Sequence record: NC_061442.1
DNA length: 64,000 nucleotides
Strand: one strand, 5' to 3'
Positions 1,159 to 47,346 of the stretch are shown piece by piece. A program made the translations under genes and the position numbers. Position 1 is the first letter of the stretch; each line of letters begins with the position of its first letter. The notes beneath the pieces are model-generated. The model made no database searches and was not told where the DNA came from. It saw only the letters and a program-made list of their open reading frames with translations.

Positions 1159-1980
1159 TTAATCTCCTACTGCCGTGTACCAGAAGTCCCAACCGACAGT
1201 GTTAGTGCCGCTGGACTTAATGGTAAAGCCACCCAACAGGGCGTTCTCGTTCATAGCACTGGTACCGTCCAAGTTATACAACGTATACGTCTTAGCTTGG
1301 TTGGTGGCCGCGTTAACGAACGTGATCTGCAAGCTGATGCAGCGGTTAATGAACGGACTGTTGAAGATAACGTGCAGAGTATCAGTTGTTGATTTGTTCA
1401 CGACACGGGCCATGTTGTGAGTAAAGCCCGTATTCATGTTTCGATTACTACCAACCCAAGCATTAGGTACTACCGCACCAGTTACTGGGTCAAGCGCTTG
1501 CGACACGCGATATTCATCAATCGCAGCATCGCGTCCAGGACTACCTGTAGGTCCTGTTGCACCCGTGGGTCCTACTGCACCAGTGTTACCTGTTGCACCT
1601 ACAGGACCCGTATTACCGGTAGGGCCGTTACGACCACGAGGGCCGCGAGGGCCCGGGCAGCCGTCATCACCATCACGTCCATCACGACCGTTAGTGCCTG
1701 ACAGACCGCGCAAGCCTTCTTTGCCCTGCTTACCTTCACGTCCAGACTTGAGCTGGTCAGCAGTAGGCAAACCAATAACGTTTGTCTGACTGCCGTCTGG
1801 CCAGATGATAGAAAGCGTACCGGTAGTAGTATCGAACTGAGCACCCTGTGAGCCTGGAATCTTTGATGCTTCTGCAGGGTCGATGAATGCAACCGCTGTC
1901 GAAGTTTTCTTACCCAGCACTTTACCAACGGGGTCAGTGCCGCCGTCAATAAGTGATGGGTTAATTCGTGTTAAAGACAT
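1159..1980 (-). CDS. Collagen-like fibre protein (24 Gly-X-Y triplets) with C-terminal globular head
   Basis: Uninterrupted GXY run GREGKQ...GSPGRD; N-terminal beta module shared with the three collagens at 7155-9730; AGGAG RBS. Confidence 0.9.
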   Translation of the reverse strand: MSLTRINPSLIDGGTDPVGKVLGKKTSTAVAFIDPAEASKIPGSQGAQFDTTTGTLSIIWPDGSQTNVIGLPTADQLKSGREGKQGKEGLRGLSGTNGRDGRDGDDGCPGPRGPRGRNGPTGNTGPVGATGNTGAVGPTGATGPTGSPGRDAAIDEYRVSQALDPVTGAVVPNAWVGSNRNMNTGFTHNMARVVNKSTTDTLHVIFNSPFINRCISLQITFVNAATNQAKTYTLYNLDGTSAMNENALLGGFTIKSSGTNTVGWDFWYTAVGD

Positions 1981-1990
1981 GGGTGAGCTC

Positions 1991-2194
1991 CTAACCAGTC
2001 AGTGTTGTCCAATCAGGTTGACCCGATTGTCCGGCTTCTGGATTTTTGACTTTCGTGTTGTTGACTGTCATACGAATCCAACGAACAGTTCCGTCTGTAT
2101 CTTGCCACCGGACCTTCGTGCCACCGTATGCTAAATTAGCTACCCATCTGTCTCTGCTTGGGTCTTTGAATGCTAAACGTGCATATGCGGGCAT
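1991..2194 (-). CDS. Small virion protein (67 aa), similar to the N-terminal module of the 673-aa protein
   Basis: AAGGAG RBS; fills the gap exactly; Trp-containing beta pattern similar to residues 1-53 of 5124-7145. Confidence 0.75.
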   Translation of the reverse strand: MPAYARLAFKDPSRDRWVANLAYGGTKVRWQDTDGTVRWIRMTVNNTKVKNPEAGQSGQPDWTTLTG

Positions 2195-2203
2195 AAATTC
2201 TCC

Positions 2204-5080
2204 TTACTCGATTTCACTCGGTTCCCAGCAAAGGATAGGTCTGCGCCACACTTGGAACACACCGATAGGGTCAGCTCGGCCACCATCAATGAAACAATCC
2301 ATGGTGCGACCGCCGGAGTTGCCGCTCTGCATTAACGTCTGCAAGTTGGCAATCCAAGAAGCACGACCTCCAGAATCAGCTTCGAACAGCCCTTCCCATA
2401 CCATATCGAACGCACCGTTCCACGCATTGAAATGATGCGATGAATACGCACCGTCGCCAACACTACAAAGAACCATGTACTGATAGTCTTTCACGCATGG
2501 GATGCTGTAGTTGTTACCACGAGGAACAGTCGCACTGTTATTGTTGAAGATACACTCCCAACCAGTACGATCCGCCGAACCTGTTGTTAAGAACAGGGGA
2601 CGACGAATGATCATCATGATACCATTCTGCCCGCCGTTATCGCTAGACTTTTCGCAGTACGCATTACAGCGCAAGGCGCGGTCAACGGTAAAGGTAGTTG
2701 AGTTGGAGAAGTCACGGCAGTAGTAGTTCGAACCCCACTTAGGCAGATACTCTGCTGGTGGTACGAAGAAATGACGTTCAGCAAGTTCAATTTCACCGTA
2801 GCGGTCATACGCAAATACGATGTACTCAAAGCCTGCTTCAATCTGGATATTGTGTCCCTGAGTGCCGACGCCCTTCCATCTCCAGACAACTTGCCAATCG
2901 TTCGTATCACGGTCAGGCAGTTCAGTGATAAGCTGATAAGGACGCTCATACACATGCCACACTTTCCCTTCTTCTGTCGTGTTGATATACAGAGAACTAG
3001 GATCGTTGATGTTACCGTTAGACGTACCGCAATAAACTTTATGCGATGCACCAGCAGAGTTATAGATAGTGCCTGAGCCGATTGAACTAAACATGTCCCA
3101 GTTCATCATCAGGTGAGAGGTACACATTTCGTTCTGGCCACTACCATCGGAGGTTGTGAGCAGATACTCATTCAAATCTTTGAACGCATAGCGAACGTAA
3201 CTAGAACCAGCACGGTTGACACGATGCACCCAGTCATGCGATTGAACCTTCGGCACAGGGAAGCATGGGTTAGTGACAGACACGACGAAGTTTTTAGTTT
3301 CGTACATAGGCAGTTTCTTGAAGCGGTTATCACGAATCGTTACCGTGTGCTTCATGCCATATGTTTGACCACCGTCCATTCCGCCCAACACTTTGTAGTA
3401 CGACTCATGCGCACTCTTGGTGTTTTCGAACAGACCAGTAATGCCCAACGCAAGTGTACCATCACGATCTGTACCTGTGCAATAAGGAACGTTACCGGAA
3501 TCGAAGTCAAAGCCTACCGAGTAGTAGCTATCCGGTGAGCTTGATTTAGGGCCCCAGTACAGTTCTGTGTGCGCCGAACCTTCACCAATACCAGGCTCGC
3601 CGAACACACAATATGCAGCACGGTACACATACTGACTGCCTTGGAACACACGGCGCGAAGCACCAATGCGATACATAGCAGCAGGCAGACCGCCCTGTAC
3701 ACGGTTAACGTCGGCTGTATCATACGACACAACGAAGACATAACAGTCGGTGCCGATTGAGTTGAGGAACGCAGCACAGGCAGCAGCGTTAGCAACGCCC
3801 GGGTTAGTGCCTTCCGCAGATGCGTGAATATCAAACGAGCGACGTTCAAGCAGCGCAAGATCTGATTTACGAATCTTATAGACGTTCAGGCCGCGCGTAT
3901 CGTTATACTGGGTACCGTTGTAAACAGTGTAGCCGTAATCACCTGTATCGAGATGACGCTGATAGCCTACTACATGCGAGAACAGTCGGCTACGCGCCTG
4001 CAACGCTTGGCCATTCTGATTCGACCACGTGACAGACACATCCCCAGCAGCAAGACGAGCTGCCCAATCATCAGGCTTGTATGGGTAGGTAGTAACATCG
4101 AAGTTAACACCGTACGCCGAGCCCGGCTCCACACAGCATGGGTCACGATAGATAATAGCTGGGTCGAGAATCACATCATCTGGAATATCAACCTGACCAC
4201 AATACAGTTGTTTCCACGCACCAGGCTGCCCTCCGAGTGAAGAAGGTCCTGCTGGAGGGGTTGTATTAAACTGATAGATTGCAGACGTGCGATAGTTAAT
4301 CTGATTATGGAGCTGCGGAACATTCGTCCAAGCAACATGGTTGCCTAATGCGTTGATGCTCTTATCGTGCGCAGCCTTTGTGGAGACGACGTATGCCTGT
4401 CCGTTACTGCGAATGCCTAGTGGGTTGAAGATAGCATTGAAGTTCACGTTACCTTCGTATGCGTTCTTCTGCAATACAATCAAACTAACGCCGTTGCGGT
4501 GCGCCTCACGGAGCGCGGTGAGCATTGCCGTGGGCATACTTTGATTGGTGGCGGACAACAAAAGCATTACACAGCTAAACTGTTTGAAATACTTATACGA
4601 GCCGTCATATCCGTATGCACCAGCGTTGATTTCCTGCCAGCTGTGTGCAAGCATATCCAAAGGCATACGCTGCATGTAACCAACAAGCTGACCCCAGGAC
4701 TCCATGGATGTATCATCATTGACAGGAGCTAAGTCAGAGATGACAAGCATGGAAGTGCCGTTAGTGATATTTGAATTGTAACCACGCTGTGTCAGGAAGT
4801 GACGCAACGCGCCCATGTTGTTGATGGTCTTGTTTCTGTAGTTGCCAAGCCACCCGTATGAGGCATCCACCAGCGGGCTACCATCTCGCACGAAGCGACC
4901 ATTCATAAACACAGAACCAAAGCCGCACACATAAGCTAGAGCGTGTCCGTCTACAACGAATGACGTAAAACGTGAGGCATCGACACCCATAGCATCTACC
5001 GCAGCCTCTGTGCCATTGCCAGGACTGCCGCTGAATACTGGAGTGATGCCCCTAGCATACAAGCAACTTTGTTGTAGCAT
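2204..5080 (-). CDS. Large tail-fibre/virion protein with ILEI/PANDER (GG) lectin-like domain and C-terminal repeats
   Basis: 958 aa; RGLNVYKI...VFVVSYD...IGA...YRAAYCVFGEPG (about 3560-3900) matches the GG/ILEI pattern; an N-terminal region resembles a GATase-like alpha/beta fold (weaker call). Confidence 0.75.
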   Translation of the reverse strand: MLQQSCLYARGITPVFSGSPGNGTEAAVDAMGVDASRFTSFVVDGHALAYVCGFGSVFMNGRFVRDGSPLVDASYGWLGNYRNKTINNMGALRHFLTQRGYNSNITNGTSMLVISDLAPVNDDTSMESWGQLVGYMQRMPLDMLAHSWQEINAGAYGYDGSYKYFKQFSCVMLLLSATNQSMPTAMLTALREAHRNGVSLIVLQKNAYEGNVNFNAIFNPLGIRSNGQAYVVSTKAAHDKSINALGNHVAWTNVPQLHNQINYRTSAIYQFNTTPPAGPSSLGGQPGAWKQLYCGQVDIPDDVILDPAIIYRDPCCVEPGSAYGVNFDVTTYPYKPDDWAARLAAGDVSVTWSNQNGQALQARSRLFSHVVGYQRHLDTGDYGYTVYNGTQYNDTRGLNVYKIRKSDLALLERRSFDIHASAEGTNPGVANAAACAAFLNSIGTDCYVFVVSYDTADVNRVQGGLPAAMYRIGASRRVFQGSQYVYRAAYCVFGEPGIGEGSAHTELYWGPKSSSPDSYYSVGFDFDSGNVPYCTGTDRDGTLALGITGLFENTKSAHESYYKVLGGMDGGQTYGMKHTVTIRDNRFKKLPMYETKNFVVSVTNPCFPVPKVQSHDWVHRVNRAGSSYVRYAFKDLNEYLLTTSDGSGQNEMCTSHLMMNWDMFSSIGSGTIYNSAGASHKVYCGTSNGNINDPSSLYINTTEEGKVWHVYERPYQLITELPDRDTNDWQVVWRWKGVGTQGHNIQIEAGFEYIVFAYDRYGEIELAERHFFVPPAEYLPKWGSNYYCRDFSNSTTFTVDRALRCNAYCEKSSDNGGQNGIMMIIRRPLFLTTGSADRTGWECIFNNNSATVPRGNNYSIPCVKDYQYMVLCSVGDGAYSSHHFNAWNGAFDMVWEGLFEADSGGRASWIANLQTLMQSGNSGGRTMDCFIDGGRADPIGVFQVWRRPILCWEPSEIE

Positions 5081-5100
5081 GTTATGTCCTTAAGATCGGC

Positions 5101-5124
5101 AAGAGGGGCCGAAGCCCCTTCTTT
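5101..5124 (-). terminator. Intrinsic terminator (possibly bidirectional)
   Basis: Minus strand GGGGC-TTCG-GCCCC (cUUCGg loop) followed by TCTT, right after the 673-aa stop; a T-rich tail also follows on the plus strand. Confidence 0.75.
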
Positions 5125-7145
5125 TACCCAAATACTATTTCAGTGATTGCAAGATAGGTCAAGTCGTTCGAGTCGCCTCTATCTCCGCCGCCATGATAAT
5201 ACAGCCACACCTCTTCACCTACAGGGATGTTCGTATCAAACGTAAAGCGTTGGAGAACGTTAGACCTACTCGCTACGTCCTGTTCAGCACCTGCGCCTGC
5301 GTAACGTTCATAAATACTGATGTTATGCCAGCCGCCATTTCGGCCATCATACACCCAGTCAAATGTGATACGCTTGATTGGTCGAGTAAAGAAGTTATTC
5401 CACTTGAACCAACCACTGGTGCCTCCCCATAAGTTCTTGTAGCTACCATCCCACGAAGTGAGGTTACTTACGTCACTGCTAATACCTCGTCCACCTGTTT
5501 GTGCGAACGTATAACAGTACCAAGGGAATGTATCAGACTCCGGAGGTAACGCGCTGCCTCCAGATATAGTCACGCAACGATAAGGAACCGTGAAGTCACT
5601 CACGTTGATGTGTGGAGGCTGAATAGGGCAGTACACATAGTACGACCAATCACATCCGATAGGTGCTGTAACGCGAACAGTGATGTTAGCGCGAAGCACA
5701 TGCTCAGGGTATTTCCAAAATTCGAGTGTGCCAGTACGACCCGCAACAACGATTGCTATATCTAGCAGGTTCATGTCTTGGTCAAACACTTCGAACTTCG
5801 TATCAAACGAGTTCGCTACGCAAACAACAAGCTCGGCGCGGATATCCGTTTGAGTTCCTAACGCAAAATTATCTTCTGTAGTTGGATGGCCAGCAGAGTA
5901 TACGCTGTAACTCTGGCACGGGTGCATAAATTCTCGTGCACCACGCTCGCCAGGGCAGTACAAGCTGTAGAAGCAACTGGCCAGTGAGGCAGCATTACCG
6001 AAGTCTTTGCTGACCACACGCACCATGATATCACAAGCAACGTTCTGAGGGTCGAAGTAGAAGTATAGATAACCTTCTCCTGTCTTAGCGTCAAGCGTAG
6101 TTGCGATACGACGACCAGATTGATAGACCTCAATGAAGTCGAACGTTTCCCATGATGTGTAATCGAGATACATCCAGCCCGCTACCCAACCGATGAAGTG
6201 ATAATACTCAAATGCGTTAGCATTCTGAATACGATCTGCGATCGGCCAAACAGTTGCGTGGCAAGGTGCAGGGAAGATAGGGCTGCCGATATAATCAGGG
6301 TGGATAACGTCAGGGAAGTTGATAACGTCATACGCAGCCTGACTATCGAGCGCTAACCCACCACGGTCAGAAGGTGCAGCAAGTCTAGGCGGATAGACTT
6401 CGAGACTCCAACCGAACCCCTGAGTAGTACGAACACGCACCATGATACGCATGTCAGCGGCGTCAGGGTCGAACTGGAATTTGATACGAGAACGTCCCGT
6501 AACTTTACCACACGTCGAAGCAACACGCACACCCATATGATACACGTCAACACTCGCACCTGCAGGAGCATACGAGGCAATCATCAGCTCAACGTAACCT
6601 TCAACAGCAGGCATGGCGTAGATTGTTTCTGTGATTGTAGCGCCACGACCATGAACAGACGCATACGGTACGTTAGGGTTAGCGTATGTACCTAAGCCGG
6701 AACGAGAAGCAACACCAACAGGGTCGTAAGTCTCGATGGCTTTGATACCTGGTCTATTAATCGATCGACCAGTCGGAGGAGCAAAAGAATTAACGAGACC
6801 GAAGCCAGTACGGCCAGCATCAGGCAAGTCGAAGCCAGCTGGATAGCCTTTGAGTATGTCATACTTCTCACGGCCCCCTGAGCCAATACCGTTGCCTGAG
6901 CCTTTGGTTGTAGATGTAGGACCGCCGCCACAAGCACCCGTCTCGACATTCGAACACGGGTCATCATATGTAGGGTCAAACGAGTCATCAATAAGATGCC
7001 AGCGCTTGCCCCACTGATTACGGACGCTGAACTTCTCTGGAGTCAGAGGAGTCCAGTCGCCGTCTTGTGTGCGTATGAACATGGGCGTGTCCACACAATC
7101 ATGCCAACCGTTATTCGCAGCATTACGAACGCGAAAACGTGCCAC
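5124..7145 (-). CDS. Virion fibre/adhesin-like protein with three tandem beta-sandwich repeats
   Basis: 673 aa; three repeats ending WSLEVYPP, CFYSLYCP and WSYYVYCP; distinct C-terminal domain; AAGGAG RBS. Confidence 0.75.
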   Translation of the reverse strand: MARFRVRNAANNGWHDCVDTPMFIRTQDGDWTPLTPEKFSVRNQWGKRWHLIDDSFDPTYDDPCSNVETGACGGGPTSTTKGSGNGIGSGGREKYDILKGYPAGFDLPDAGRTGFGLVNSFAPPTGRSINRPGIKAIETYDPVGVASRSGLGTYANPNVPYASVHGRGATITETIYAMPAVEGYVELMIASYAPAGASVDVYHMGVRVASTCGKVTGRSRIKFQFDPDAADMRIMVRVRTTQGFGWSLEVYPPRLAAPSDRGGLALDSQAAYDVINFPDVIHPDYIGSPIFPAPCHATVWPIADRIQNANAFEYYHFIGWVAGWMYLDYTSWETFDFIEVYQSGRRIATTLDAKTGEGYLYFYFDPQNVACDIMVRVVSKDFGNAASLASCFYSLYCPGERGAREFMHPCQSYSVYSAGHPTTEDNFALGTQTDIRAELVVCVANSFDTKFEVFDQDMNLLDIAIVVAGRTGTLEFWKYPEHVLRANITVRVTAPIGCDWSYYVYCPIQPPHINVSDFTVPYRCVTISGGSALPPESDTFPWYCYTFAQTGGRGISSDVSNLTSWDGSYKNLWGGTSGWFKWNNFFTRPIKRITFDWVYDGRNGGWHNISIYERYAGAGAEQDVASRSNVLQRFTFDTNIPVGEEVWLYYHGGGDRGDSNDLTYLAITEIVFG

Positions 7146-7154
7146 ATGATCTCC

Positions 7155-7646
7155 TTATGGGCGAACCCAAATAGCGCCGGCTTCCACCTCATTGTCGATA
7201 GCAGGGTCCGTATCTTGTACGAACACCATTACCTTACCGGGATTACCTGGAGAACCAGTAGGACCGGTCGGGCCCGTAGGACCAGCTGGGCCGCGGTTGC
7301 CTACATAGCCTTGCTTACCTTGCAGACCATCTGAGCCTCTAGGCCCAGGGCAACCGTCAGTACCACGACGTCCATCACCGCCCATAAGACCGTCAAGACC
7401 ATCACGACCCGACGGACCTACGCCACCAACAGGACCGTAGCCGATGCTGTGAATAGTAGGCAGCCCTGCGATCTGTATCTTACCAATCGTAGGGATGTTC
7501 AGTGCGAGTACACCAGTGAGTTGGTCGAATGAACCGCTGAGTGTGCTATAGTCTTCTTCGGTGTCTACTGTAACACCGCCTTGAGTGGCTTTCACAGGAC
7601 CAGAAGCATTGGTCTTGAGAAGCGCAATATCAACTTTTTCTACCAT
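7155..7646 (-). CDS. Collagen-like protein (23 Gly-X-Y triplets)
   Basis: GPVGGV...GNPGKV run; C-terminal VFVQDTDP...GAIWVRP motif; AAGGAG RBS. Confidence 0.9.
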   Translation of the reverse strand: MVEKVDIALLKTNASGPVKATQGGVTVDTEEDYSTLSGSFDQLTGVLALNIPTIGKIQIAGLPTIHSIGYGPVGGVGPSGRDGLDGLMGGDGRRGTDGCPGPRGSDGLQGKQGYVGNRGPAGPTGPTGPTGSPGNPGKVMVFVQDTDPAIDNEVEAGAIWVRP

Positions 7647-7655
7647 GATTACTCC

Positions 7656-8288
7656 TTACGGCCAGGTAGTGCCTTGATCTTTAGTAGGGTCGACCCAGAT
7701 GGTGCCTGCGGCAACTGCTCCTGGCTGGGTAGCACTAACGATGATAGACAGACGACCCGCAGGACCCGCTGCACCGGTAGGACCCGTAGGGCCTGTAGAA
7801 CCAGTGTTGCCTGTAGGTCCAGTTCCTCCTCTAGGGCCGGTAGGTCCGGTAGGTCCCATAGGGCCAGTGCGTCCATCAGGTCCGGTAGGTCCTACAGGGC
7901 CAGGTAGACCATCACGCCCATCTGGGCCAGGAATGCCTTGCTCTCCGTCGGGACCTATATTACCATCACACCCCTGTTCGCCAGGACTACCATCTCGACC
8001 GTCACGCCCATCTTTACCGTCAGCGCCAGTCTCACCTCTACCGCCTTGACGCCCTTCAGGGATATCAGAAGCAGTAGGGAAGCCTTGCACTTTGACAGTC
8101 TGACCATTAGCGAACTTGAGAGTCAAGATTCCGCTAGTCGCATCGAACGACGAGTCACCTGTTAGTTCTGACGGTACCTCTGAGTCATCAGGACTGACCG
8201 TCAGTGTGCCCTTAGAGGCACGAACGGCAGTAGGCGTAGAAGACGCACCAGCTTGAATGAGGCCGGTACTTACTTTAATCAGACCCAT
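7656..8288 (-). CDS. Collagen-like protein (34 Gly-X-Y triplets)
   Basis: GRQGGR...GPAGRL run; C-terminal IIVSATQP...GTIWVDP motif; TAATG translational coupling to the upstream gene. Confidence 0.9.
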
Positions 8289-9730
8289 TACGTTTTCTCC
8301 GCTTTCGCAACAATATCCGTATTATGCACAAGCACATCACCAACGAAGTAACAGTCGAATGGGTCAACGTCGATATCGACTGTCTGCACTTGTTCGTCTA
8401 CACGACGCATCTCATATACAGAGATAGGTCCTTTGCGACCAAGAACAGTTTGACCTGCTTGCACATCACGCGCAGGAACATAGCGCCATACGATATCATC
8501 GTAAATCAAAACAGGATGTTCGTGCGTGAACTTCTGTCCATTAATCACATAGTAATGATCTTCTTGGCCGCGCACGAGAGCTTTAACAGTCGCGTATACG
8601 GTTGTGCCTTTTATGCTAGGCGAAGACCATCTGCGAAACTCTTTTGGCTGATTCGAATAGCCAAGTAACGCATCACCAACACGTAAGTCTTCAACTGCTT
8701 TCGGACCAACGATAGTGTTAACGACAGAGCCGTACACGATACAGCCGGATGTTGCAGTGTTAGTAGGGTTACGAGCCACAACAGTAAGCGCAGACCTAAC
8801 AGTAACAGTCGGACGCGATGTTTGACCCATATCAGTTACCAGACAGCTAATGGTGCCTTTGATTGTACGATCAGCACCTAAGCCAAGTCTCAGGTAGAAG
8901 TTAACAATGCAGGTGCTTGTCTCAATAGCATCAAGAGTCACACCCTCTGTGGTAGTGATAGTCCATTTATACTTATACGGACCGACACCACCACGCGCAT
9001 TGACAGGTAAATATGCCAGCGACGTAAACACATCAGAACCCTGCACTGTACGTTGACCAACCATGTACAGGCTAGAGACTGACGCAGCAAGAGGCGTTAT
9101 TGTAGGCAGAGGAGGAGCAGGAGTAACGTTCGTCGTAGGGTACAACCACACGAATACTTTGCTATCGAGAGGCTGCGTAGACGAAAGAACTGCTGTAGTT
9201 ATAGGAGCAGGTCCGGTAGCACCAGTAGCTCCAGCTATACAGCTAGGACCATCATTTCCTTTAGGACCTATTGGCCCTGTAGGACCGGTAGCACCGTCTG
9301 GCCCTGTAGGACCGTCTGGGCCCATGCGACCAGTATCTCCATCAGGGCCGTCTTCACCGTCACGTCCCGGCTCTCCAGCTGGCCCCGTCTTCCCTCTATT
9401 ACCTACACCACCCGGACAACCCTGTCTGCCTGTCTCTCCGTCTCGACCATCACGGCCAGGACGACCGGGAGAGCCTGGGGCGCCACGACGCCCAGGCTTC
9501 CCTTCACCAAATACTGATACAGTAGGTAGACCGGGGACGTTAACTACATCCCCGTTCTTTTTGATGAAGACTAACACACCGGTCTTGCTGTTAAATCTTA
9601 CGCTGGCGATCTGTGTTAGTGTTGCCACATCGGAGTTTTCAAATTGAACACCTCCGTCAACGCCGACTAAGGATTTACCTTCGTCATTCTGCGTTGTTTC
9701 GACTTGCGAAAGTTTTAACTGTGTTGTCAT
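8288..9730 (-). CDS. Collagen-like fibre protein with Ig-like domain and C-terminal Hint domain
   Basis: 29 GXY triplets, then CIA and 3 more; beta-sandwich ([11 protein letters not shown]); Hint domain at the C-terminus. Confidence 0.9.
8321..8743 (-). other. Hint (intein-like/BIL) autoprocessing domain, about 141 aa
   Basis: Starts at Cys (G-CIVYGS...VEDLRVGD), has the block-B motif FTHEHP and ends VLVHN followed by Thr; too short to contain a homing endonuclease. Confidence 0.85.
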
Positions 9731-12066
9731 TTCGGTTCAACCTTAATGCACAAGTTACCAGTCAGCTTCGAACCGTAGCTAGTGATCTGCGAATCGGTGA
9801 TACGCACCTTAGCCACGATATCAATGAAGCCCTGAGGTTGGTTCTCAATAAGCACGGTGAACATCTGCGTCAGGCTAACGTTAGCATACGCAATCACTTC
9901 CGTAAGATTGGCGTCAGACGTGACAACGTTGAATCCAGCGCTGCCTGTGCCCTTTAAACCGCGACCGTATTCAGCTTCTGCTGTGCCTGGGATTTTGAAC
10001 GACAGAACATATTCAATGTGCTCTTTACCGCTAGTGGCCGCAAAGCCTGGGCCCAGTTGACACTGGAAGTCAGCGATACAGGTAAGCATCACACCTTTCG
10101 AGAAGTCGATGCGCTGAGTGATAGTCAGCTCCTCTGAGTCCTCTACTGTCTGGTGGATGTTGAACATGTTCTTCGGATCAGCTTCTTCGGCTAGTGCCTG
10201 AGTATTGCTGATAGTAATCTCGGGCCACGTACCCTTAATCAGTATACCTTCACCCTGAATGATGGCCGGGGCAGCGATAGGCACATCAATCGGAGGCAGA
10301 CCCTGACGCTTGAACATGTAACCTGTTGGCGTAGGGATAGCGTCAATGATAACACCATCAACAGAACTATCTTTTGAGCCTACCGCCATGACGTTCTCGA
10401 AGATAGTGATCTCAACGAGTGTGTCAGCAGGAATAGGTGACGTTGTTTTAATCACGTTACCCGCGACGGTGAAGTCCATAGGGTGTACTGTCAGACCACC
10501 CATGGCCATAACGCAGTGCGCTTTGTTCAGTGGTGTAGTCGGCAGAGTAAATGTATCAGAATCATAAGGGAAGCGATACTGACCAATACGAATGCGAGTA
10601 GACCAGTTGGCGCGTTCTTCATAGCGAGCCACATAGAATGAGTAGCGTTGTCCTGACGGGATTGCTTCTGTCAGCGTTACCTTGTTACCTGCGTTGAGCT
10701 TGTAGACAGTTGTAGGCTGCCACGTACTACCAACGACGCAGAAGATCATGTCCACGCTATCAATCGGCTTGCTGCCCAAAGAGAACGTAGTGGTTTGACC
10801 GTCACCAGTACCTTCATACGTTTCAAACAGAACAACGTGACCTTGAGAAGGTTCGATGCGGAACTGTCTCAAGTCAAGAGACATGCGCTGCTCAGGGAAA
10901 GATGAAAGCAGAAGCTGGTCATCCACAACGCTATACGCGGTACGCGGTTGCAGGATACCTGATGTTCCGACAAACAAATCAGTCGAGCTATCGAGGTTCT
11001 CGGTCAGCGTGTATCGCATCTTATCAGGCGTAGCAGTAGTCACCACAGAACTGAACAACATCTTACCTGGAGGCACAAACAATGTTGCTGTGGTCTGACG
11101 CGTAGAGCCACCAACAGGTGCCCAATAAGGCTTGTTGTCTTTACCGCGCATTAACGCCCATGTGTCAGGCACATCGTTATTGTCAGGCCAAGGCAGACCT
11201 GCGGATGGTGTTGTCGGGTTAGTGATTCGACGCCATACTGCGATAGTAGTCTGAGCACTGATAAACGGAATAGGGTCGTCTTGGTTAACGAGCTGCCCAC
11301 CAACGTACTTGAAGTGACGACACGCACCAGCACCAGTGCCTGCGATTGTCTGAATGATCACAACTTCATTCGCTTTCAGAGTTGCAGCAAGGCTTGCAAT
11401 CTTAAACGTGTTGGCATTGATGAACCCAGCAGTCGTTATCTGGCCGCTGAATAAACGATCATGCTCGCTGAATCCCCAGTAGTAGGAGCCTGCGCCGTAG
11501 CGATAGGCAACACCGGGAGACTTAGAGCCGTCAGAGTTAACATGTAAGTCAAGTACCGATACGGCATTGAACACGTTATCTTTTAAGCTTGGCAGATTTT
11601 GCAGCGTAGCCACACTAGGAATAGAAGTGTAGTCCGCCATTTTAACAGCAAGAATCTTTTGAATGTCCTGCTGGATATGTACGAGCAAGCTCACACGGCT
11701 GATAGAGTTCGGTACAGCGATGATAGGCTCTTCCAGAACAACGTGCCCGAATGGGCGGTTGTCCGAGAGCATGATCAACAGCTCACCTACACGCTTCATC
11801 TGCTCGCCAGCAACGTAGTTGATTTTAATATCGAAGACAAATCGGGCACTGTTCTCGGTAAGTACCTGAACATATGACAGGGCGCCCGACGCAAGCTCGT
11901 TGCCAAGTAACTGCTCTGGAACCACTGACGGGTTTGAGCCTACAAAGTCACCTGCTTTAAACGACACTGGCTGAACTGCTAGTCCACCAGAGTTAGCGTT
12001 CGCAACGGCCTGTTCTCCCTGAGGCGTTAGACGCAGAGCGTCAACGTAGATAGATTCAGTGGCCAT
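9727..12066 (-). CDS. Baseplate-attached tail fibre / tail-collar-like protein
   Basis: N-terminus LRLTPQGEQAVANANSGGLAVQPVSFKAGD resembles P2 gpH-type fibre anchors; internal repeats (GDGQTTTFSL...; SDTFTLPTTP...); AAGGAG RBS before ATG at 12066. Confidence 0.7.
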   Translation of the reverse strand: MATESIYVDALRLTPQGEQAVANANSGGLAVQPVSFKAGDFVGSNPSVVPEQLLGNELASGALSYVQVLTENSARFVFDIKINYVAGEQMKRVGELLIMLSDNRPFGHVVLEEPIIAVPNSISRVSLLVHIQQDIQKILAVKMADYTSIPSVATLQNLPSLKDNVFNAVSVLDLHVNSDGSKSPGVAYRYGAGSYYWGFSEHDRLFSGQITTAGFINANTFKIASLAATLKANEVVIIQTIAGTGAGACRHFKYVGGQLVNQDDPIPFISAQTTIAVWRRITNPTTPSAGLPWPDNNDVPDTWALMRGKDNKPYWAPVGGSTRQTTATLFVPPGKMLFSSVVTTATPDKMRYTLTENLDSSTDLFVGTSGILQPRTAYSVVDDQLLLSSFPEQRMSLDLRQFRIEPSQGHVVLFETYEGTGDGQTTTFSLGSKPIDSVDMIFCVVGSTWQPTTVYKLNAGNKVTLTEAIPSGQRYSFYVARYEERANWSTRIRIGQYRFPYDSDTFTLPTTPLNKAHCVMAMGGLTVHPMDFTVAGNVIKTTSPIPADTLVEITIFENVMAVGSKDSSVDGVIIDAIPTPTGYMFKRQGLPPIDVPIAAPAIIQGEGILIKGTWPEITISNTQALAEEADPKNMFNIHQTVEDSEELTITQRIDFSKGVMLTCIADFQCQLGPGFAATSGKEHIEYVLSFKIPGTAEAEYGRGLKGTGSAGFNVVTSDANLTEVIAYANVSLTQMFTVLIENQPQGFIDIVAKVRITDSQITSYGSKLTGNLCIKVEPK

Positions 12067-12095
12067 CAAAGAACTCCTTGGGTTTTAACTATTCT

Positions 12096-45365: not shown

Positions 45366-46241
45366 TTAACCTCGCAGCGCACCACGAGCCCATGACTTAG
45401 CGAGCGCCAGAGTCATACGGCTTGGGTTTTGCAATTTGACTTCACCCTTATGCACAGCAGTGAAAGGTTCATGCGCATTCTCTCCGCGACCAGAACGATA
45501 CGCTGCTTCATTGAAGCCGTCGAATAACGTTACGACCCAGCCTGTGGATTTGTCAGAACATTCACCACAGGCTTTGTCCCAGCTAATCTTACCGCACACA
45601 CGACCACCAGCGTTAACCGCATAGCTTACTTGCTCAGTACCTTTATACAGGTCTTGAGATTTCAGCGTTTTGAACGTCACACGCGCAGCAGACTCAGAGC
45701 GCGGCGTCATCTTCTCTTTCAGTGCTTCAATATCAAGTGAAGACCAGAAGGACTCGAACAGCGCCGCAAATTTCTGCTCAATAGGCAGGTCGATAGCGTT
45801 GATTTGTGCGATGGTACTGGAACTATCATTAAGCACACGGTTGATGAAGTAACCGCCTAGGATTACTGGCATCTGTGTGCCCTGATCTCCAGTGGTCAAG
45901 CCCGCCCGTTTCGCATACATTTCACACATACCAATAGCAAGACGTGCCAAAGTCTGGAACGTCTGCTTCTCTGTACTGTTGGCAATCTCAGTATAGATGC
46001 GGCTTGCGATTGCAGGAACTACCGTACGCTTCGCTACACTCAGAATGTCTTCTGGTGTGATTGATTGGCCGAGCTTCTTCTTAGCAGCAAGTTCGAAAGC
46101 ATTAATCAGGCTTGCTTTGTTCGCTGGTGTCAGAGACTCGCTCAACTTGATAGTTGTCTGCTCCGAGCTGTTCACCAGACTCGGCTGCTGTGGAGCCTTC
46201 AGTCTGCGAACTCCCGTCGTTTTCAATCGAGCTACTGTCAT
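45366..46241 (-). CDS. Hypothetical head-region protein (291 aa)
   Basis: AGGAAG RBS; overlaps the glycosyltransferase 3' end by 140 bp. Confidence 0.7.
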   Translation of the reverse strand: MTVARLKTTGVRRLKAPQQPSLVNSSEQTTIKLSESLTPANKASLINAFELAAKKKLGQSITPEDILSVAKRTVVPAIASRIYTEIANSTEKQTFQTLARLAIGMCEMYAKRAGLTTGDQGTQMPVILGGYFINRVLNDSSSTIAQINAIDLPIEQKFAALFESFWSSLDIEALKEKMTPRSESAARVTFKTLKSQDLYKGTEQVSYAVNAGGRVCGKISWDKACGECSDKSTGWVVTLFDGFNEAAYRSGRGENAHEPFTAVHKGEVKLQNPSRMTLALAKSWARGALRG

Positions 46242-47346
46242 TTGTTTCTTCCTGATTAGGAGCCTGTAGATATTGCAACAGGCCGGAGTTCATAATCTCC
46301 TCGTTAACATCAAGACCGCGAAGCGTAGCCAAGTTAGCGAGGTAATTGAGAGCAGGTTCTACCATACCCAGATTGCGACAGCCCCAATAGGCTAAGTCGT
46401 AGCACAGGTCTAAATTAATAGGAGTTTGGTCGAACAGGAAACTTTTTGGATTCTGCTTTGACGCTTCGATACCCTGAATAGCTTGACCAATCGCATTGAT
46501 GTTGTCACCATGACGATAGAAGATATCAGCAAGCATCGCATAGCACTCAATACGGTCTGGACGGAATGCAATAGCACGATAGCAGGCGCACACCGACTCT
46601 TGAGTGAAGCCCTGCTTGAATGTAGCTTTGGCCAGTTCGATGTTAGCCAAAGCTACATAGTCTGGCCATTTAGCTATGCCAGCCAAGCGGTCAACTTCAC
46701 GACGTGCATCTTCCAGCAGGTCTGGGCGCTCATAATAACTGACCGAGTAGCAGAGTTCACGCGCATAATAGAAACTGCAACGATCATCATGTGGATAGTC
46801 ACCAACATCCAGACCAAGCTCCAGCAGATAATTACGTGCCTTGTCGTGGTCTGGATAGTGGTCAGTTGCGAACGGCGCTTCTACTGATTTGAGTCGTTGT
46901 CCTGGCTTGCGCGATGCCAGGACTTCATGCGCACGGTACTTCCAGAAATAAGAGCGACGACGATATGCTTTCATCTGCTGGTAGTGACTGTCGCCGTTAC
47001 GCATCAGAATCCAAACAGCTTCTGCTTTCTTAATGCCTTGCGTATTGCGTAGCGCCTCAACCCAATTAGGGTCATCGAAGCGCTCGTCAATATCAAGCCA
47101 CACTACAAGGTCGTCTTCCGAGAAAGGCGTAGCGGCCATCTCACGACTCGCGCCTAGATTGCGTTCTTCTGATACATCGAACACATGATACAGGTTAGGG
47201 TGCGTGAACGCCGAAATGATGTTCGTGGTTTGGTCTTCGCTACCTGTGTCCACGATACTAATCGCATCGGCACCCGCAACGTGCTTCAACCACTCACCGA
47301 TATTCTTTTCTTCATTACGGCAGATAGCCGCTACACAGATTCTCAT
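46102..47346 (-). CDS. GT2 family glycosyltransferase with C-terminal TPR-like repeats
   Basis: ICRNEEKNI, IVDTGSEDQT, VWLDIDE (DxD), AHEVL; C-terminal helical repeats (FYYARE, ACYRAIAFRPDRIECY). Confidence 0.88.
   Translation of the reverse strand: MRICVAAICRNEEKNIGEWLKHVAGADAISIVDTGSEDQTTNIISAFTHPNLYHVFDVSEERNLGASREMAATPFSEDDLVVWLDIDERFDDPNWVEALRNTQGIKKAEAVWILMRNGDSHYQQMKAYRRRSYFWKYRAHEVLASRKPGQRLKSVEAPFATDHYPDHDKARNYLLELGLDVGDYPHDDRCSFYYARELCYSVSYYERPDLLEDARREVDRLAGIAKWPDYVALANIELAKATFKQGFTQESVCACYRAIAFRPDRIECYAMLADIFYRHGDNINAIGQAIQGIEASKQNPKSFLFDQTPINLDLCYDLAYWGCRNLGMVEPALNYLANLATLRGLDVNEEIMNSGLLQYLQAPNQEETNDSSSIENDGSSQTEGSTAAESGEQLGADNYQVERVSDTSEQSKPD

Follow-up and report, generated by a model that had tools for sequence, protein, structure and literature searches.

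Collagen chains joined by cysteines are well described in C1q and in the collectins and adiponectin. In these systems adjacent paralogous collagen genes encode the chains, a cysteine close to the N-terminus of the collagen region joins chains or trimers, and the proximal segment bundles laterally before the rods diverge. A locus with similar features is present in the Erwinia jumbo phage pEa_SNUABM_35 (Alexandravirus; NC_061442.1), within a stretch of 64,000 nucleotides (genome positions 62001-126000 of 261.7 kb, matched at 100% identity) that is called the window here. Four paralogous collagen-like proteins of this phage, gp099, gp103, gp104 and gp105, have a cysteine at one and the same register of the collagen repeat. 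Unlike C1q and the collectins, the phage chains lack a gC1q or lectin/TNF-like head (Pfam gave Collagen only), and their cysteine lies inside the helix, at the X position of triplet 10, and not before the helix. They are also viral proteins, whose synthesis takes place in a reducing cytoplasm.

Cysteines also lock the chains of type III collagen, where the helix ends in a cystine knot (Gly-Pro-Cys-Cys-Gly). BclA/Scl-type proteins and the collagen-like phage tail fibres (E. coli O157 prophages, gp61 of phi24B, gp68 of staphylococcal phage 80alpha) resemble the four proteins in their hydroxyproline-free, Thr-rich (G-P-T) Gly-X-Y repeats, in having non-collagen trimerisation modules and in their putative role as a surface fibre. 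The number of repeats usually varies in those proteins, for which no conserved cysteine within the helix has been described, whereas in the present phage family length is fixed for each paralogue and the register of the cysteine is kept across a jumbo-phage clade. No BclA_C domain was found by Pfam in the proteins of the window. Structural disulfides between virion subunits, in particles assembled in the cytoplasm, are known from phages of Gram-negative hosts, namely in the tail sheath of Agrobacterium phage Milano and in the tail-tube rings of a siphovirus. Those bonds join sheath or tube proteins and were seen by cryo-electron microscopy, whereas a bond between phage collagens is one that we infer.

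The four genes all lie on the minus strand, and their products are called the A, B, C and D chains here. The D chain (gp099, 273 aa, 1159..1980) has an N-module (residues 1-79), 24 triplets (80-151), a cap-like segment and a C-terminal domain of ~120 aa. The C chain (gp103, 163 aa, 7155..7646) consists of an N-module (1-70), 23 triplets (71-139) and a cap, and the B chain (gp104, 210 aa, 7656..8288) of an N-module (1-78), 34 uninterrupted triplets (79-180) and a beta-hairpin cap. In the A chain (gp105, 480 aa, 8288..9730), the N-module (1-76) and 29 triplets (77-163) are followed by Cys164, three more triplets, a cap, a middle domain and a C-terminal Hint/bacterial intein-like (BIL) domain. 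All four proteins match Pfam PF01391 at 46-55 bits (cut-off 27.2), and no other collagen genes were found when the 261.7-kb genome was searched in full with Pfam Collagen.

A preliminary description, made by hand count, had reported the motif G[LF]PT, exactly six residues, nine Gly-X-Y triplets and then a cysteine at the X position of triplet 10 (Cys10X) in each protein. A scripted count of the four translations reproduced this register exactly in all four. The G[LF]PT motif is at residue 70 in D, 61 in C, 69 in B and 67 in A. The cysteine codons, all on the minus strand, are TGC at 1657..1659 (Cys108 of D), TGC at 7350..7352 (Cys99 of C), TGT at 7968..7970 (Cys107 of B) and TGT at 9416..9418 (Cys105 of A). 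The triplet totals reported earlier (24, 23, 34 and 29+3) matched the script; the last of these reflects Cys164 of A (9239..9241, minus strand), which takes the Gly position of triplet 30 and is followed by three further triplets. The switch from charged (G-[RK]-D) to Thr-rich triplets that had been noticed was likewise seen in the alignment. A C-terminal S/D-T-Q/D-P...W motif had been assigned to three of the proteins; the motif is present, but a variant of it (...[TD]xP...W) forms the cap in all four. The four chains align without gaps from the N-module past the cysteine at 31-37% identity. Therefore, the common register was inherited from one ancestor and is due neither to chance nor to convergence.

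Conservation of the cysteine was examined in 191 distinct family members, which were collected with a hidden Markov model of the non-collagen N-module only, scanned over all open reading frames (ORFs) of the fetched loci. Cys10X is present in 187 of them (98%), and no other non-glycine residue of the module is so well conserved. The next-best positions are the Gly of G[FL]PT (92%) and an Asp at the Y position of triplet 7 (88%). At the other X and Y positions of triplets 1-23, cysteine occurs only at the X position of triplet 20 (38 times) and as three strays. A word-based search with the B chain returned 2808 relatives, and among the best 120 of these every protein with an N-module has Cys10X, down to ~35% identity. 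In an alignment of 56 B sequences, the invariant residues other than Gly are Asp49, Cys107, Pro189 and Trp198. A second scan of viral contigs with an alignment of the N-module only was still keyed on collagen peptides and gave almost no new members. Cys10X is thus under strong selection, and the possibility that the cysteine would not be conserved in homologues, which the preliminary description had named as fatal to its proposal, did not materialise. The cysteine is missing from the A chain of Dickeya phage JA29 (L107, 9016-9990; L numbers are our handles for loci), from the A chain of L121 (7653-8366), which has a cysteine at the X position of triplet 29 instead, and from the C chain of L123 (10001-10522). 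No loss was seen in B. Of two extra paralogues, one of 361 aa in L006 (10597-11682) has no cysteine in its helix and one of 255 aa in L123 has Cys10X.

Many distant B chains have a second cysteine, at the X position of triplet 20 (Cys20X), exactly 30 residues past Cys10X. A register-aware count per genome found Cys20X in both A and B in 10 clusters (L003, L004, L006, L013, L112, L113, L114, L115, L123 and PaBG) and in neither chain in about 18 clusters (Alexandraviruses, JA29, Yoloswag, fHe-Yen9-02, NCTB, Afa-NA1, Lu11 and relatives, and L116-L121). There were no clusters with Cys20X in A or B alone, and C and D never have it. On an independent maximum-likelihood tree of the neighbouring gp106 homologue (24 rows), the joint A/B state of Cys20X changes at least three times, with three changes forced by well-supported branches. 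For instance, both cysteines are absent in NCTB but present in its sister L112, and the Lu11 clade, which is without both, is nested in a clade that has both. Gene conversion was ruled out as the source of this pattern, since A and B of the same genome have essentially only the cysteine in common around triplet 20 (X/Y identity over triplets 1-29 is 12-31%). Repeated joint gain and loss in two diverged paralogues is the behaviour expected of paired cysteines. This co-variation supports pairing of cysteines, in register, between different chain types and is the main evidence for it. It had been proposed that the cysteine serves heterotrimer formation or coupling between fibres; the putative inter-chain pairing common to both gains support from Cys20X.

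The lengths of the collagen runs are conserved as well. The A-B-C...D set was found in about 28 clusters, which comprise named phages (AD1, Alexandra, JA29, Yoloswag, fHe-Yen9-02, NCTB, Afa-NA1, PaBG and Lu11) and metagenomic jumbo-phage contigs. Gene order is constant: gp25-like and baseplate-wedge genes, a protein of ~1100-1650 aa, the gp106 homologue of ~770 aa, then A, B and C, followed by large ILEI, Calx-beta or PA14 proteins, a small ORF and D. The cluster lies directly downstream of the gp25-like and baseplate-wedge genes in all relatives. Chain types were assigned by loose length windows, inside which the triplet counts were single-valued. The A chain has 29 triplets in 33/33 sequences and the C chain 23 in 33/33, while B has 34 triplets in 89 of 94 sequences and 33 in the other five. 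These lengths are constant even at ~40% identity. The length of D switches by clade, with 24-25 triplets in 31 sequences, 40 in two and 49 in four (the Lu11 clade). Microbial collagen-like repeats are seldom so constant, which suggests that the rods have a defined length. The A, B, C and D rods resemble rulers or struts. The preliminary description had suggested a modular system of collagen hairs or whiskers. Position in the baseplate module and the strict lengths of A, B and C agree no less well with struts, or with a defined network of baseplate fibres, than with free hairs.

We tentatively favor a reading, to which we would give somewhat less than an even chance, in which the chains form homotrimeric rods that stand parallel and in register and are joined laterally by disulfides at equal height. 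The four ancient paralogues would be trimeric collagen-like fibres of the baseplate region. The beta-rich N-module of ~75 residues, the six-residue linker and the charged proximal segment would set the rods in one register from a common anchoring plane, and each chain type would make its own homotrimer. When the virion meets oxygen at lysis, thiols at equal height could oxidise to disulfides between adjacent rods. Such staples would hold the rods in a bundle or network whose geometry is fixed, as in the stalk of C1q or of a collectin. The A and B rods of those members with Cys20X would carry another staple, set farther out by one helical repeat (30 residues, ~8.6 nm). Cys10X is 28 residues from the start of the helix, or ~8 nm at a rise of 0.286 nm, and the X position of triplet 20 is at ~16.6 nm.

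The geometry of collagen, among other points, favors lateral links. Side-chain contacts between the strands of a triple helix run from Yaa to Xaa, in the same or the next triplet, and not from Xaa to Xaa, and engineered cysteine or homocysteine bridges within triple helices have been destabilising or negligible in effect. X positions of the same number point outward and are not partners within a helix, which favors links between rods. Parallel rods in register present equal-numbered X positions at equal height, and this would explain why the register is identical in all chains. The 10/3 collagen helix, the form expected for an imino-poor sequence, regains the same face after 30 residues. The spacing of Cys10X and Cys20X equals this repeat, so both cysteines of a chain would face the same neighbor. 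In the Lu11 clade, D has a length (49 triplets) common to no other chain, which argues that D is homotrimeric, yet it keeps Cys10X, so that the cysteine can serve its role in a homotrimer. Extra paralogues come and go, as in L006 and L123, which would be easy for modular homotrimers.

Arrangements confined to a single trimer agree less well with this geometry. The preliminary description had proposed a fixed disulfide ring by analogy with the cystine knots of eukaryotic collagens, and we did not retain this idea. Eukaryotic knots have paired cysteines at the helix end, whereas each phage chain has a single Cys10X at an X position in mid-helix, with no adjacent second cysteine and with 13-24 triplets still following, and cannot close a three-chain knot. 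With an odd number of cysteines (three per trimer), outward X positions and contacts that run from Yaa to Xaa, a closed ring inside one trimer is unlikely. One disulfide per homotrimer, plus one free thiol, could instead stabilise or register the helix with no link between fibres; the cysteine is kept in every chain type, including the homotrimeric D, and extra stabilisation is plausible for helices without hydroxyproline. We regard this as very improbable because it shares the unfavorable X-X geometry and the odd cysteine count, and because independent stabilisation of A and B homotrimers would not make Cys20X co-vary between them. A more serious contender, though still an unlikely one, is that A and B form one heterotrimeric helix (A2B or AB2) with interchain disulfides at Cys10X and Cys20X, while C and D form separate trimers. 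The perfect A/B co-variation of Cys20X would follow directly, and a comparison of matched lengths showed that in most clades A and B, unlike C and D, end together, each with the Pro of the cap at triplet 37 and the Trp at triplet 40-41. The difference of 29 versus 34 triplets, which we had counted against a shared helix, was withdrawn as an argument once the triplet layout showed this. The A stop and B start codons share one nucleotide (TAATG), which would couple their translation, and only A tolerates substitutions of Gly (Ala or Gln at triplets 5, 6, 8 or 16, and Cys at 30), defects that would be buffered by two perfect partner strands. In the PaBG clade, however, A is non-collagenous and capless after triplet 29 while B keeps perfect triplets 30-34 and the invariant cap, even though both cysteine pairs are present; this suggests that the partner strands of B in that clade are other B chains. 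Cysteines at the same X position are not contact partners within a triple helix, every 2:1 composition puts three of them at each level, and the exact spacing of 30 residues has no rationale inside one helix. C and D have the same cysteine although they are unable to share a helix with A or B. We also know of no heterotrimeric collagen outside animals, and that this phage clade has the first, an A/B triple helix that evolved independently and is covalently registered by conserved cysteines, seems to us doubtful.

The cysteine could also bind each fibre to a common non-collagen partner in the baseplate, such as a socket or sleeve (gp101/gp102, gp106 or gp107, for example), or it could be a site of covalent modification. 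The N-module, the charged G-R-D segment and the cysteine are kept in all four chain types, as would be expected of a shared docking site, and homotrimeric D keeps the cysteine too. The proteins gp101 and gp102, which are conserved in the cluster, contain 2.1-2.2% cysteine compared to a window mean of 0.94%. We consider this improbable, since joint gain and loss of Cys20X confined to A and B would be left unexplained; no partner with a co-varying cysteine was identified, though no systematic search was made. Several observations weigh against laterally linked homotrimeric rods as well. The shared ends of A and B in most clades and their translational coupling fit a mixed helix equally well, and with three cysteines per homotrimer most ways of packing would leave some thiols unpaired. 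Loss of Cys10X from one chain is tolerated, as A shows in JA29 and L121 and C in L123. Thioredoxin, DsbA and glutaredoxin were not found in the phage genome by searches with valid controls, so that oxidation would be uncatalysed and would follow lysis; in the Erv1 search the control itself was silent. An AlphaFold2 monomer model of B (gp104) had a mean predicted local distance difference test score (pLDDT) of 63 and a predicted template modelling score of 0.24 and left the collagen repeat extended at low confidence. It did contain a small beta-meander, with strands within residues 22-68 (pLDDT ~80 for 41-70), and a C-terminal beta-hairpin cap. A Foldseek search of the PDB with this model gave nothing at E <= 1e-3, which leaves the N-module without a structural match. 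Profile and sequence searches of PDB sequences with the N-module matched only generic collagens, and a search of the ESM Atlas yielded nothing but unnamed viral clusters, at values below 0.9.

The A chain has further features of its own. A cysteine in the Gly slot of triplet 30, a position that faces the helix axis, is present in 33/33 A-type sequences, and the Lu11 clade has additional cysteines at the Y positions of triplets 28 and 32. Lying at or next to the helix end, these are more like the type III knot than Cys10X is. The triplet-30 cysteine, with its knot-like cluster in the Lu11 clade, may be a lock within the trimer or a metal site, separate from Cys10X. The cap Trp of C shares the triplet number (30) of this Cys-for-Gly replacement. 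The C-terminal domain of A (8321..8743, minus strand) matched PT-HINT at 24.7 bits, below the cut-off of 27.7, and Hint_2 in Pfam, and residues 331-470 match the solved BIL domain 2lwy (E 8e-6). The Hint nucleophile Cys330, the C-terminal His-Asn470 and Thr471 were confirmed, and a tail of 10 residues follows. That a collagen fibre should end in a complete Hint/BIL domain suggests that its tip is autoprocessed or ligated. NCTB encodes the Hint part in an ORF of its own, and the JA29 A chain (324 aa) seems to be without it.

Between C and D lie the conserved genes of gp101 (958 aa, with an ILEI domain) and gp102 (673 aa), at 2204..7145 on the minus strand, with 21 and 14 cysteines. Their counterparts in relatives have ILEI, Calx-beta or PA14 domains and differ widely in size (894-2233 aa). 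Both are likely to be distal adhesin or host-range modules. Directly upstream of A is the conserved gene of gp106 (780 aa, 9727..12069, minus strand), which has a weak match to a tail-collar fibre N-terminal domain. The 9-nucleotide spacer from B to C holds the GGAG ribosome-binding site of C. HNH endonuclease genes lie between B and C in L109 (Yoloswag; 11204-12061) and in L115 (10748-11578), which marks this operon junction as an insertion site for mobile elements. Elsewhere in the window, a GT2-TPR glycosyltransferase gene (46102-47346) is found among virion genes.

The collagen proteins matched PHROG families annotated as tail fiber protein, among them phrog_8745 (E 1e-25 to 1e-36) and phrog_38766 (E 8e-256). 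In phrog_8745, the unit of N-module, collagen and cap aligns to positions ~1300-1515 of a 'tail fiber' profile with 1803 positions. This internal match indicates that some phages carry the module inside a long fibre protein and not at the N-terminus. Thus, the N-module may serve to register the trimer instead of anchoring it to the baseplate.

In the papers on JA11, AD1 and Y3, the orthologues of D, C and B were named tail fibers one to three. The clade has been assigned to the 'hairy Myoviridae', whose tail-end structures are unresolved, and its members with four paralogues include PaBG, Lu11, NCTB, Y3, JA29 and Yoloswag. The 14 abundant proteins identified from a PaBG gel do not include these collagen proteins. 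No description of Cys10X or of the collagen register was found in the searched literature on these phages. Cysteines that are locked in register and co-vary, together with fixed rod lengths, are absent from the literature that was searched, where the proteins have been described simply as hypothetical or as tail-fibre proteins.

Collagen-like fibres are widespread on phages and spores but are regarded as floppy spacers of variable length. Here, in contrast, an entire jumbo-phage clade has kept four fibres of exact length in which one or two cysteines stand at exact heights; this implies that the baseplate fibres form a precisely built and covalently stapled assembly. The exceptions in L107, L121, L123 and L006 are natural 'mutants' of it. 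If the reading of stapled rods is true, it would provide a molecular basis for those tail-end structures of 'hairy' jumbo phages that are still unresolved, and disulfide stapling of collagen to collagen would join the repertoire by which virions are stabilised. It would also yield a design rule for cross-linking hydroxyproline-free recombinant collagens, namely cysteines at X positions 30 residues apart. Since phages of this clade are under development against fire blight and soft rot, the architecture of their fibres bears on host range and particle stability.

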